Program-made: the position numbers and the translations under genes
Source: Octopus sinensis
Lineage: Eukaryota
Assembly: GCF_006345805.1 (NCBI RefSeq)
Contig: NW_021830313.1
Coordinates: 1 to 5,043, forward strand
Length of the DNA: 5,043 bases
Direction of reading: 5' to 3'
Shown: positions 1,386 to 5,043 of the stretch, piece after piece
How positions within the stretch are numbered: the first letter of the stretch is position 1
Layout: each line of letters starts with the position of its first letter
The notes under the pieces: model-generated
What the model was told of the DNA's origin: nothing
Database searches by the model: none
What the model saw: only the letters and a program-made list of their open reading frames with translations

Positions 1386-1563
1386 TCAAAATGTGACCGC
1401 GTGTGTATCGTTGGCGATTTATTTCCTCCGTCTTCCCTTCCTTGGATCTTTCCTTTACCTATATTTCTGATGGAAGAGCTCCGCCAAACGTTAAATCCTC
1501 CTTCTTTTCTTCCTTTCCTGAGCGTCCAATAACACGTCCTCGCGTTGTGTTTTCATTTTTGGT
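1386..1563 (+). mobile_element. Pyrimidine-rich ~180-bp element flanked by (TA)n; candidate Penelope-like terminal-repeat or retrozyme-type fragment
   Basis: Bounded by (TA)n on both sides, unrelated to families A and B, and carries a CTGATG(G)A...AAACGTT motif typical of Penelope-associated minimal hammerheads. The family assignment is inference. Confidence 0.5.
1463..1496 (+). ncRNA. Degenerate minimal type I hammerhead-ribozyme-like motif, probably inactive
   Basis: ATTT-CTGATGGA-AGAGCTCCGC-CAAAC-GTT-AAAT: stem I ATTT/AAAT, CUGAUG core, palindromic ACGT stem III. Deviations are an extra G in the core, C instead of G12, and a truncated stem II. Confidence 0.45.
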
Positions 1564-1605
1564 AATATATATATAATATATTATATATATATATATATAT
1601 ATATA
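1564..1605. repeat. Imperfect (TA)n microsatellite
   Basis: AT-only tract ending in a long perfect TA run that abuts the fold-back element. Confidence 0.95.
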
Positions 1606-1638
1606 ACATAAGGGACTAAAGCCATCTGAATATGGCTA

Positions 1639-1661
1639 GGGACAGGGCAGGGTGGGGGGGG
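1639..1661 (+). other. G-quadruplex-forming motif in the left TIR
   Basis: GGG-ACA-GGG-CA-GGG-T-GGGGGGGG fits the canonical G3+N1-7 four-tract pattern. Confidence 0.7.
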
Positions 1662-1838
1662 TGTTACTGTTGCATTTAGCCCCAGGCGAACATCGACGTC
1701 GCCAGATAGGCTTGACACATCACGGTGTCCTTTAACCTACAAAGGGAGATAATTCCCCGATGAAGCGGAAACCACACACGGACCATGGTTTCAAGGTGTA
1801 TTGCCTATCATCACCTGGGGCTAAATGCAACAGTAACA

Positions 1839-1861
1839 CCCCCACCACCCTGCCCTGTCCC
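1839..1861 (-). other. G-quadruplex-forming motif in the right TIR
   Basis: Minus strand reads GGG-ACA-GGG-CA-GGG-TGGT-GGGGG. Confidence 0.65.
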
Positions 1862-1944
1862 TAGCCATATTCAGATGGCTTTAGTCCCTTATGTTATGGA
1901 GCAGTTACTGTCTATATCTCATTTAGAGAATTATTATTGCTATG

Positions 1945-1963: not shown

Positions 1964-2094
1964 GTAGTATACTATAAACAGTTGTACATCTTGACTGGTT
2001 CACGGTGTGTAGTTAAGTTTTGTTCTAAAATTGAGTGTACATGTACTACTGAGAGTCTAACGTGCGATTTACTCAATAGGTGGAGTATAATTCG

Positions 2095-2192
2095 TCGGCG
2101 AAATTTGAACTTGGAGCGTCGGAACGTGAAGACAGACGAAATGTTGTTAAGCATTTTGGCCGGCGTACTAACGATTCAGCCAGCTCGCCGCC
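2095..2192 (-). mobile_element. Family B SINE, tRNA-like head only
   Basis: The minus strand starts ggcggcgagctggctgaatcgttagtacgccggccaaaatgcttaac. It is collinear with 3430-3518 and has a B-box-like agttcaaattt. Confidence 0.88.
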
Positions 2193-2213
2193 TGGAGTTG
2201 AATAGAGATATTA

Positions 2214-2403
2214 GTTTCAAATTTTGGCACAAGGCCAGCAATTTCGAGGTAGAGGCTTAATCGATTAAATCGATCCGAGTGCTCAACTAGTACTTATTTC
2301 ATCGCCCCCAAAATGATGAAAAGCAAAGTGGATGTCAGTGGAATTTGAACTCAGAACCTAAATACAGATGAATTGTCACTACTGATTTTACCAACCTCTC
2401 TGC
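2214..2403 (-). mobile_element. Family B SINE with a deleted or decayed head
   Basis: gtttcaaattttggcacaaggccagcaattt...atcgattaaatcga...gtacttatttcatcg...gatgaaaagcaaag...ggaatttgaactcagaac is collinear with 4063-4277 and 4881-4980. Confidence 0.88.
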
Positions 2404-2441
2404 ATTAATATGATAATGTTTTCTAATTTAGACACAACTCA

Positions 2442-2590
2442 ATATTTATTTGCCGAGTTTACGTTCTGAGTTCAAATTCCGCCGGGGTCAACTTTACCTT
2501 TTATCCCTTCGGAGCCGATTTAATAAATACCAGTTGAACAGTAGGGGTTGATGTAATCAACTTAACACATCCTCCGAAATTATTGCCCTC
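2442..2590 (+). mobile_element. Family B SINE lacking the A-box; the only plus-strand family B copy
   Basis: acgttctgagttcaaattccgccggggtcaactttaccttttatcccttcgg is the reverse complement of 3400-3453. B-box-like GAGTTCAAATTCC at 2468-2480. Confidence 0.88.
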
Positions 2591-2619
2591 CAGTTGAAAA
2601 CTGAAGAACAATCAATTAT

Positions 2620-2777
2620 ATCTACTTCGATACTAAACGGATACATTAATTTGAAACCTTCAAAAAGATAAAAGGCCAACACGACTCTACCGGGTATGGA
2701 CTTAGAAAGTAAAAGAATGTAATTGAATACTAAAAGATCATTTCTTCGACGCTCGCCAATTATGCCTTCTCACCGCC
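2620..2777 (-). mobile_element. Highly decayed family B SINE
   Basis: gataaaaggccaacacgactctaccgggtatggacttagaaagtaaaag is similar to gatgaaaggcaaagtcgacctcggcggaatttgaactcagaacgtaaag. It ends with catttcttcgacgctc...aattatgccttctcaccgcc, like other family B heads. Confidence 0.6.
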
Positions 2778-2796
2778 CGTCCTCAACCTGAAAATA

Positions 2797-2910
2797 ATGA
2801 TTTCCAACATAAGGTACTAAACAAGAAGATTGATGGGGAAACCATTGATTTTATCAACCCCTGTACTTGAGTGGTACTTTATTTTATTGACGCAAGGAGA
2901 ATGAAAATAG
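2797..2910 (-). mobile_element. Decayed family B SINE 3' portion
   Basis: ttgattttatcaacccctgtacttgagtggtactttattttattgac closely matches 4114-4158 (aatacatcgacccctgtacttcgctaatactttattttatcgtc). Confidence 0.7.
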
Positions 2911-3056
2911 CATTGAGGTAAAGTGCCAGATTCAATTTAATCCATCGACTACTAATCTACGTCAGTATATAATTGGTTAGCAAGGTAATGGAACTGTTGA
3001 GCTTCAGTTTCCGGCCAACCACGCGCGAGGATTCGAGTTCTAGTGTACCTTCACGG

Positions 3057-3062
3057 AAAAAA
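3057..3062 (-). terminator. Candidate Pol III terminator (T6 on the minus strand) downstream of the dimeric SINE
   Basis: A6 on the plus strand. It is the first run of 4 or more T met on the minus strand after the SINE start at 3518. Confidence 0.4.
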
Positions 3063-3094
3063 GTCATGATACTTATGGCTAGAATGTCTCTTAT

Positions 3095-3518
3095 ATATTA
3101 CATTATTGCCAACAGGGGACTAAACATAGAGGGGGTAAACAAGGACAAACAAAGTGATTAAGGACAAACAAAGTGATCAACCCCAGTCCTTATTTAACTG
3201 GTCCTTATTTAACCGACCCGAAAGGTTGAAAGGCAAAGTCAACCACGGTGGAATTTGAACTCAGAACGTAACAGTAGATGTAATACCTATTTCTTTACTA
3301 CCCACAAGGGGCTAAACACAGAGAGGATAAACAAGGACAGACAAACGGATTAAGTCGATTATATCGACTCCAGTGCGCAACTGGTACTTAATTTATCGAC
3401 CCCGAAAGAATGAAAGGCAAAGTCGACCTCGGCGGAATTTGAACTCAGAACGTAACGGCAGACGAAATACCGCTAAGTATTTGGCCCGGCGTGCTAAAGA
3501 TTCTGCCAGCTCGCCACC
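3095..3518 (-). mobile_element. Dimeric family B SINE: complete head plus unit 1 (3287-3518), followed by an A-box-less repeat unit (3095-3286)
   Basis: Two tandem ~185-190-bp units (ggggctaaacacagag.../ggggactaaacatagag...; gaaaggcaaagtc...ggaatttgaactcagaacgtaac) join at aatac|ctatttc (3286/3287). A-box-like TGGCAGAATCT at 3498-3508 and B-box-like GAGTTCAAATTCC at 3434-3446. The central block resembles the Meta/MESC SINE core (recalled). It may be the Octopus 'Twin' SINE (unverified). Confidence 0.9.
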
Positions 3519-3660
3519 CTAATGCCTCTTATAATAGGTCCCACAATCAATGCTCGCCTGGGACAAAATAGCAAGTGGAATTACCGCAAAAAATTTTACC
3601 TTTTCATTTAGAGATTCAGCTCCCACATCGTCCTATAAAAATGATAATAATAATTTATCA

Positions 3661-3864
3661 CACACACACAAAAAAAGGGTCAAAAATTCGAAGTAGGAGG
3701 ACAGTCGATTATATCAACTTCAGTACTTGTCTGGTATCTGATTTTATTGACCACGGAAGAACGAAAGCCAAAACTGACCTCGGTGGGATTTGAACTCAGG
3801 ACAAAATGTCGAAATAAATACGTAAAAATGTTTTGCCTGACCCTAATAATTCGCAATGCACCAC
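3661..3864 (-). mobile_element. Decayed near-full-length family B SINE
   Basis: agtcgattatatcaacttcagtacttgtctggta...gacctcggtgggatttgaactcagga is collinear with 3352-3450. Confidence 0.8.
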
Positions 3865-3868
3865 TACA

Positions 3869-4020
3869 TTTCTTAAATAGTTACAAGGCCAGAAATATGG
3901 GTGTTGGGAACAGTTGAAAAAGTTGATACCGGAGCTGTATTGATATTTTCTTTTATCGATCCCAGAAGGATGAAAGGTAAGTTGGGCGCAGGAAAGACTT
4001 GAAAACAGGACATCAGAAGC
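3869..4020 (-). mobile_element. Decayed family B SINE, 3' two-thirds
   Basis: acaaggccagaaat...ttttatcgatcccagaaggatgaaaggtaagt matches the family B 3' and central segments. Confidence 0.7.
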
Positions 4021-4062
4021 TGCATCAATGGAATCGATACCATTGTAATGTTCAAAATAATT

Positions 4063-4277
4063 GTTTCAAAGTTTGGTACAATGCCTGAAGCTGTACGGGA
4101 AGGGCGCTAGGCAAATACATCGACCCCTGTACTTCGCTAATACTTTATTTTATCGTCCCTGAAAGGATGAAAGGCAAAATAGAACCACGGTAGATTTTGA
4201 GCTCAAAGCTTAAAGACACAGAACGAATGTCGCTAAGAAGTTTTTGCTTGATACACCAACAATTCTGCCAGCTCGTC
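4063..4277 (-). mobile_element. Full-length decayed family B SINE
   Basis: Runs from gtttcaaagtttggtaca through gaaaggatgaaaggcaaa to aattctgccagctcgtc (head). Confidence 0.85.
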
Positions 4278-4285
4278 TCTTATTA

Positions 4286-4470
4286 ATAATCGACTTTACT
4301 TAAGACACAAGGCTTGAAAGTTTGTGTGAAAGGGCCAGTCGATTACCTCAATATTTTGGGGGGTAATCGACTGGTACATATTTTATCGACCACGAAAGGA
4401 TGAAAGGCAGAATTTGAACTAATGATGTACAGACGGACGAAATACTGCTAAGCATTTTGTCTGGCATACT
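4286..4470 (-). mobile_element. Family B SINE, main part, interrupted at 4470 by a family A insertion
   Basis: gacacaaggcttgaaa...ttttatcgaccacgaaaggatgaaaggc..gaatttgaact...gacgaaatactgctaagcattttgtctggcatact. Confidence 0.88.
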
Positions 4471-4837
4471 CTCTTTACTCTTTTGCTCTTTTTCTTGTTT
4501 CAGACATTTGACTGCGGCCATACTGGAACACCGCCTTTAGTCGAGCAAATCGACTCCAGGACATATTTTTGTAAGCCTTAGTACTTATTCTATCGTTCTC
4601 TTATGCCGAAACGCTAAGTTATGGGGACGTAAACACACCAACATCGGTTGTCAAGTGATGTTGGGGAGGGGGGACAAACACAGACACACAAACATATACG
4701 CACACATACACACATATATGTATACATATATACGACGGGCTTCTTTCAGTTTCCATCATAAGGCTTTGGTCGGCCCGAGGCTATACTAGAAGACACTTGC
4801 CCAAAGTGTCACGCAGCGGGACTGAACCCGGAACCAT
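4471..4837 (-). mobile_element. 5'-truncated family A SINE nested in family B, with CATACT target-site duplication
   Basis: Collinear with 278-637 but stops at gaacccggaaccat, so it lacks the A-box. The 3' tail is ~8-nt ctcttt(t)a-like repeats at 4471-4495. CATACT is present at 4465-4470 and 4835-4840. Confidence 0.92.
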
Positions 4838-4840
4838 ACT

Positions 4841-4864
4841 AACGATTCTACAAGATTTTCGCCT
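4841..4864 (-). mobile_element. Displaced 5' tip of the interrupted family B SINE
   Basis: aacgattctacaag...gcct continues the head sequence (compare ctaacgattcagccagctcgccgcct at 2168-2193). Confidence 0.7.
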
Positions 4865-4880
4865 TTTGCTGTTTATTAAT

Positions 4881-4980
4881 TATGGTTTTAAATTTTGGCA
4901 CTGGGTCAGCAATTTTTGAGGGGAGGAGAAAAGTCGATTACATTGACTCCAGTACTTGACTTCTTCGTCTTTTATCGACC
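4881..4980 (-). mobile_element. Family B SINE 3' portion
   Basis: tatggttttaaattttggcactgggtcagcaattttt...aagtcgattacattgactccagtacttgac...ttttatcgacc is collinear with 2214-2305. Confidence 0.85.
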
Positions 4981-5043
4981 AAGCTGAAAACCAGGATACT
5001 ATGGCCCCGGTTTTCAACATGGTAGCCATGACTGGGAGTGGTT

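Follow-up and report, generated by a model that had tools for sequence, protein, structure and literature searches.

The window analysed here, a stretch of 5,043 nt of Octopus sinensis DNA, contains a fold-back of 295 bp with sharp boundaries, which adjoins an older host repeat, has no coding capacity, and carries arms with diverged relatives at other Octopus loci. Our results point to a MITE-like non-autonomous DNA transposon, most likely of the Tc1/mariner type, a reading to which we give somewhat better than an even chance. It is the best-supported of the explanations considered, on the grounds of its symmetric clean ends, matching flank dinucleotides, GC step, non-coding content and repeat-derived arms, together with the documented recent activity of terminal inverted repeat (TIR) elements in Octopus.

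Structure of the fold-back

The features of the fold-back and its insertion site, numbered on the window, are the following:

1603-1897, no strand: whole fold-back, 295 bp, bounded by the inverted repeat
1603-1689, forward strand: left arm, 87 nt; its first 84 nt hold 30 G and 14 C and no CpG
1811-1897, reverse strand: right arm, reverse complement of the left arm at 85 of 87 positions
1690-1810, no strand: spacer or loop, 121 nt, GC 0.49, CpG observed/expected about 1
1620-1637, forward strand: nested hairpin AGCCAT-CTGAAT-ATGGCT, with a mirror copy at 1863-1880
1604-1605, no strand: candidate left target-site duplication TA; alternative reading AT at 1603-1604
1895-1896, no strand: candidate right target-site duplication TA; alternative reading AT at 1896-1897
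1406-1605, forward strand: host repeat of the insertion, older, about 190 bp, with a (TA)n tail at 1565-1605

A repeat search of the window returned arms of 87 nt (1603-1689 and 1811-1897) that are 98% complementary, with 121 nt between them. The first-pass annotation had described arms of 84 nt matching at 83 positions; our own alignment gave the same value for 1603-1686 and 1814-1897, with the sole mismatch at 1656(G)/1844, and extended the match to 85 of 87, as the inverted repeat runs 3 nt beyond the 84-nt arms, the second difference being located at 1687(C)/1813 (CpG on the left, TpG on the right). The spacer measures 127 nt with the shorter arms and 121 nt with the longer ones. The same annotation had reported an arm share of 57%, the nested hairpin and a CpG contrast between arms and spacer, all of which were recovered: the 84-nt arms account for 168 of the 295 bp, the hairpin is present in both arms, and the CpG counts are 0 in the left arm, 8 in the 127-nt spacer and 0 in the right arm, the left-arm count referring to the first 84 nt, outside which the inner-edge CpG falls. 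No tandem sub-repeats occur inside the arms, and TRF picked up just the flanking (TA)n arrays. The termini of the fold-back read (AT)AACATAAGGG...CCCTTATGTT(AT), the outer ends of the inverted repeat being ATAACATAAGGG...CCCTTATGTTAT, and the GC content steps at both boundaries, from 0.35 in the left flank to 0.505 in the fold-back and 0.32 in the right flank.

Open reading frames inside the fold-back do not exceed 45 aa. A stop-free frame of 44 aa, which runs through half of the spacer and the right arm, had no protein relatives in a 5.8-billion word-indexed search or in a HMMER scan of 1.84 billion representatives, and exact look-ups of two window ORFs returned no record; since a SINE-derived ORF used as control likewise matched nothing, these protein-search negatives are uninformative on copy number. 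Rfam gave no match inside 1603-1897 at E <= 1, and ARAGORN found no tRNA in the fold-back.

The inverted-repeat structure is far beyond chance: the longest stretch of exact inverted match is 53 nt, whereas 200 shuffled versions of the window never exceeded 15, and the RNA fold of the fold-back reaches -205.9 kcal/mol, against -88.9 +/- 5.3 for shuffled sequences (z = -22.3). The nested hairpin taken alone is weak evidence, as a hairpin with a 6-bp stem was present in about 7% of shuffled arms. The CpG-free state of the arm has P = 0.0013 by shuffling; as one arm is a copy of the other, this counts as a single observation and not two. Methylation-driven decay after formation of the fold-back was considered as its origin and rejected; independent decay would have made the arms diverge, and the CpG-free state must therefore predate the arm duplication. 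The inner-edge CpG (1687/1813) decayed in one arm only.

Palindromic chimeras occur in amplified or long-read libraries, and an assembly or sequencing artefact, for example a fold-back chimera, could in principle yield a palindromic arrangement. However, such chimeras are usually long-armed with little or no unique loop, whereas here a unique spacer of 121 nt separates arms with two differences, and the flanks are clean and lie inside ordinary octopus repeats; we find this origin scarcely credible.

Insertion site and flanking dinucleotides

The fold-back lies precisely where the (TA)n tail of the host repeat ends on its 3' side, and interrupts nothing. The methylcrotonoyl-CoA carboxylase beta gene of O. 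vulgaris and O. sinensis carries, in an intron, a paralogue of the host repeat that is 84% identical and likewise has (TA)n at either end (L005:17259-17051 and L003:17227-17020). Because the fold-back directly follows the (TA)n tail, and the paralogue ends in the same tail, the fold-back arrived later than the host repeat. We considered this paralogue for an empty-site comparison and discarded it, as it ends in its own (TA)n tail and does not span the insertion point. The host repeat, of about 190 bp, shows no obvious SINE head. To the right of the fold-back, the flank matches nothing else in the window or in 445 kb of Octopus DNA.

Under a TA duplication, the element proper spans 1606-1894 (289 bp) and reads TA-ACATAAGGG...CCCTTATGT-TA, a Tc1/mariner-like arrangement; under an AT duplication, it spans 1605-1895 (291 bp) and reads AT-AACATAAGGG...CCCTTATGTT-AT, which is ISL2EU-like. 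Both alternatives had been put forward in the first-pass annotation, and the flanks do fit both, but the two are not distinguishable in a TA microsatellite. With a TA microsatellite as the left flank, and with TA and AT both palindromic, a 2-bp duplication is nearly uninformative here; the frequency of the TA dinucleotide in the window is 8.5%, and from a single copy neither duplication can be preferred. Regarding other superfamilies, the 3-bp TWA duplication of PIF/Harbinger was looked for, and the flanks would give TAA at the left end but TTA at the right, with no direct repeat; the 8-bp, 7-8-bp, 9-10-bp or TTAA duplications (hAT, P, Mutator and piggyBac) are absent at the repeat boundaries.

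Copy number in sampled Octopus DNA

Copy number was assessed in 445,268 bp of Octopus genomic loci (O. sinensis, 170 kb; O. vulgaris, 165 kb; O. bimaculoides, 110 kb), chosen via annotated Octopus proteins that were matched from translated O. vulgaris transcripts (supplement of PMC9115989). No second full or near-identical fold-back was found in these loci of three Octopus species or elsewhere in the window, and no relatives of the spacer were found in either. This result corresponds to a 95% upper bound of about 20,000 copies in a genome of 2.8 Gb, which holds only if the family is common to the sampled species; the sample rules out SINE-like abundance only, and is far too small to exclude further full copies. 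Two arm segments had no match in metagenome contigs, viral contigs or prokaryote genomes, where an octopus SINE used as control was absent too, so these negatives are uninformative on copy number. In the O. vulgaris transcriptome supplement, the first 400 kb do not contain the arm, and a full-text literature search returned no occurrence of arm or SINE strings.

These findings bear on the main alternative, in which the structure would be a single-locus inverted duplication: an old repeat fragment (the arm) would have lain beside a unique spacer, and an inverted copy of the arm would have been added locally, by template switching or hairpin-primed repair near the fragile (TA)n tract. The lack of another full copy in 445 kb, the unique spacer and the position of the fold-back next to the (TA)n tract all agree with such an event, as do the solitary arm relatives described below, none of which is a fold-back, and the CpG counts of 0 in the arm versus 8 in the spacer, which are expected if the two differ in origin. 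Furthermore, the structure-based 'MITE' class of O. vulgaris comprises 65 families for 65 young insertions (PMC13282606), which we read as indicating that many structure-based octopus MITE calls are singletons. On the other hand, both ends of the repeat are clean and carry matching TA/AT dinucleotides, the full 295 bp and not one arm alone differs in GC content from both flanks, and the searched sample is far too small to establish a single copy. Weighing these points, we regard a local duplication, including the proposed repair mechanism, as possible though rather unlikely.

Other long-arm fold-backs are present in the sample (L007:29026-29498, with its orthologue in L008; L001:8483-9183; L001:6605-7244), each at a single locus plus orthologue, and such structures occur about once per 30-50 kb; one of them has 141-nt arms, 98% complementary, around 191 nt. 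An abundant repeat with an internal palindrome (arms of about 90 nt) was also observed (L003:4305-4653, 13065-13385 and 13938-14104; L004:7297-7642; L007:20747-20854); the sequence outside its palindrome, gttctatatttaagagatgaggaat, is conserved from copy to copy, so that the palindrome belongs to a larger element. A fold-back of about 340 bp in L003 and L004 (arms of about 90 nt, 23-24 BLAST matches) was examined as a possible comparator and rejected: its apparent flanks are conserved between copies, so it is a palindrome within a larger repeat and not a clean MITE.

Diverged relatives of the arm

The arm has two diverged relatives in the sampled loci. The first (L003:36659-36695, equivalent to L005:36118-36154) matches arm positions 55-91, at 27/30 and then 31/37 positions (blastn E ~1e-4), and extends a few bases past the arm into sequence resembling the spacer. 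The second (L013:3030-3089, equivalent to L012:1574-1632) matches arm positions 7-75 at 47/69 positions (E 6e-4), and retains the hairpin motif AGCCATCTcAATATGGCT at L013:3040-3057 as well as the block GGGGGGTGTTACTGT. With the single fold-back as query, nhmmer gave E values of 0.008-0.01 for each relative; considering both methods, the matches are statistically marginal (E ~1e-4 to 1e-2). Both relatives are solitary, each occupies orthologous sites in the genomes of O. sinensis and O. vulgaris, and a partner arm or spacer is absent at both loci. The second one constitutes a unit of about 84 nt. Its start coincides with the homologue of the arm terminus, and a 12/13-nt direct repeat, CATTTTTAGAGA, encloses it (L013:3015-3124, equivalent to L012:1559-1668). 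This enclosing repeat resembles either a local tandem duplication or a long target-site duplication, and does not agree with a Tc1/mariner origin of the arm family.

Together, the two matches suggest that the arm descends from an old dispersed repeat family, and solitary decayed relatives of this kind fit the leftovers of an old transposon family. The evidence for these relatives is suggestive, not strong, and bears on the arm; the mobility of the whole fold-back unit is inferred.

The L013 relative also bears on a further explanation, namely that an ~85-nt mobile unit inserted twice, independently and head to head, 121 nt apart, in the manner of an inverted SINE pair. This relative is indeed a solitary unit of about 84 nt with a direct repeat, and inverted SINE pairs are common in the window (e.g., 2275-2362 and 2458-2545); however, the two arms are 99% identical and have the same inner end position, neither has its own flanking direct repeat, and the L003 relative continues past the arm into spacer-like sequence. 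Two insertions are, in our view, very unlikely.

Positions 2806-2821 of the window (AACATAAGGTACTAAA), which belong to the head of a SINE-like repeat (cf. 3116-3124 and 3305-3316), match the fold-back terminus AACATAAGGGACTAAA at 15/16 positions (E 0.04). The match is short and was noticed post hoc, and we treated it as coincidence; the same was done with ATAACATAAGG, which also lies inside the terminal repeat of the Drosophila P element and is likewise a short, post hoc match.

Assignment to a transposon group

According to the transposon reading, the unit would consist of two terminal inverted repeats of 84-87 bp around an unrelated spacer of about 121 bp, measuring 289-291 bp in total and encoding nothing. 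A DDE transposase supplied in trans would recognise the terminal repeats, cut the unit out and paste it in, and the landing site would have been a TA (Tc1/mariner-type) or an AT (ISL2EU-type) where the (TA)n tail of the older repeat ends on its 3' side. Of the features by which MITEs are recognised, terminal inverted repeats are present (85/87), the size is below about 800 bp with no coding content (295 bp, ORFs of at most 45 aa), and TA/TA or AT/AT dinucleotides flank the repeats as candidate duplications, the left one within a (TA)n microsatellite. The first-pass annotation had proposed a MITE, and its proposal is partly supported, by the short, non-coding body, the long TIRs, the sharp boundaries, the TA/TA (or AT/AT) flanks and the arm relatives, whereas multiple whole copies were not found in 445 kb. 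The lack of a second full copy in 445,268 bp, the marginal arm relatives and the near-worthless 2-bp duplication stand against this reading, as do the direct repeat around the L013 relative, which a Tc1/mariner insertion would not leave, and the 65 'MITE' families for 65 young insertions in O. vulgaris.

Tc1/mariner-derived MITEs include the plant Stowaway elements, and human MADE1 is an 80-bp palindromic MITE derived from Hsmar1, which gave rise to the miR-548 hairpins. Like these elements, the fold-back is short, non-coding, composed mostly of TIR and flanked by TA, and would form a long hairpin if transcribed; unlike classic mariner MITEs, it has longer arms (84-87 bp) and a candidate TA duplication that is non-diagnostic in a microsatellite. 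Its terminus under this reading would be ACATAAGGG. In Drosophila Foldback (FB) elements, the arms are built of tandem sub-repeats and measure hundreds to thousands of bp, with duplications of 7-9 bp. The fold-back resembles FB and Galileo fold-back transposons in that the arms make up most of it, and differs from FB in that TRF finds no arm sub-repeats and there is no 7-9-bp duplication. ISL2EU, of the PHIS superfamily, makes 2-bp duplications, typically AT (PMC4122938); an AT/AT reading of the flanks and the AT-rich target would suit it, but the same flank bases read equally as TA/TA.

In O. vulgaris, TIR elements have been recently active, with Tc1-Mariner constituting the largest group (73 families and 1553 young insertions; PMC13282606). 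We consider a TA landing of the Tc1/mariner type more likely than an AT landing of the ISL2EU type; the superfamily and any present activity are inferred. The fold-back is probably a small transposon of an ordinary kind, set in octopus repeat DNA. If a MITE, it would add one more small DNA transposon to a genome of which about two-thirds are repeats, with hundreds of TIR families already known, a result that would be unsurprising, yet useful for repeat annotation and possibly as a presence/absence marker.

Regarding its age, the near-identity of the arms had been taken to indicate recent activity. This does not follow, because the arms of a MITE move as one copied unit, so that arm identity does not date transposition. 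Under the local-duplication model, which like conversion lets the arms begin identical, as the estimate assumes, 1/84 to 2/87 arm differences correspond to about 2-3 My with a very wide error, using the calibration of a Jukes-Cantor distance of 0.09 for 25 My per lineage (PMC13282606).

Potential for double-stranded RNA

If read through, the locus would give a transcript forming a duplex of 84-87 bp with 1-2 mismatches, as the first-pass annotation had anticipated, and as a conditional statement this is sound in view of the in silico fold given above. Such a duplex would be a plausible ADAR or Dicer substrate, as a by-product and not a demonstrated function. An exceptional fraction of octopus loci can form long near-perfect dsRNA, and octopus gave the strongest hyper-editing signal among 19 species surveyed; near-perfect dsRNA-forming structures are commonplace in its genome (PMC5625713). 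Inverted repeats that form ADAR-edited dsRNA include the octopus loci just mentioned and a palindromic frog repeat with heavy editing (PMC5625713); like them, the fold-back has a potential intramolecular duplex that is near-perfect, exceeds 50 bp and is formed from repeat sequence. Fold-back elements are obvious contributors to the octopus dsRNA load, and a family-level census could help explain that load.

Two less ordinary interpretations concern this potential. The fold-back could be a hairpin-RNA gene under selection, serving as a source of endogenous siRNA or as a miRNA-like precursor; its stem is extremely stable, and octopus has an exceptional number of near-perfect dsRNA-forming loci with heavy hyper-editing (PMC5625713), but Rfam has no match in the fold-back, the arm relatives at other loci are not hairpins, and a perfect stem of 84 bp is not miRNA-like, all of which makes this function highly improbable. 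More broadly, it is quite unlikely that the fold-back represents either a lineage-specific, still mobile family of long-TIR octopus MITEs adding 84-bp hairpins to the dsRNA and ADAR hyper-editing load, or a young hairpin-RNA gene. We return to the transposon reading as the preferred one.

Surrounding repeats

Apart from the fold-back, the window consists almost wholly of old SINE copies, which recur dozens of times in the sampled loci of O. sinensis, O. vulgaris and O. bimaculoides at 78-90% identity and mark the window as Octopus nuclear DNA. The neighbouring repeats had been described as heavily decayed, in agreement with identities of 62-90% among the SINE copies of the window and 78-90% to copies elsewhere. 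A tRNA-derived SINE with an internal CA/TA microsatellite is present in four copies in both orientations (285-640, 700-1120, 1195-1385 and 4474-4838), which share 75-87% identity with each other and 78-87% with many copies in the three Octopus species. A second octopus SINE, characterized by GGAATTTGAACTCAGAACGTAA, is present in at least 10 decayed copies (62-90% identity) at 2090-4470 and 4860-4990, and is the element making up the O. vulgaris transcript comp3721 (PMC9115989 supplement): a 14-mer of the window SINE matches this transcript, the whole of which is that SINE.

In L007 of O. sinensis, a gene call at 4423-5052 carries an integrase core domain (PF00665 rve) and lies upstream of a THAP-domain gene; it is likely a retroelement or DNA-transposon remnant, and is not called in the orthologous locus of O. 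vulgaris. Within the window, about 400 bp downstream of the fold-back, the inverted SINE pair at 2275-2362 and 2458-2545 (88-nt arms, 75% complementary, 95 nt apart) constitutes a second, much weaker potential dsRNA former (2275-2545).
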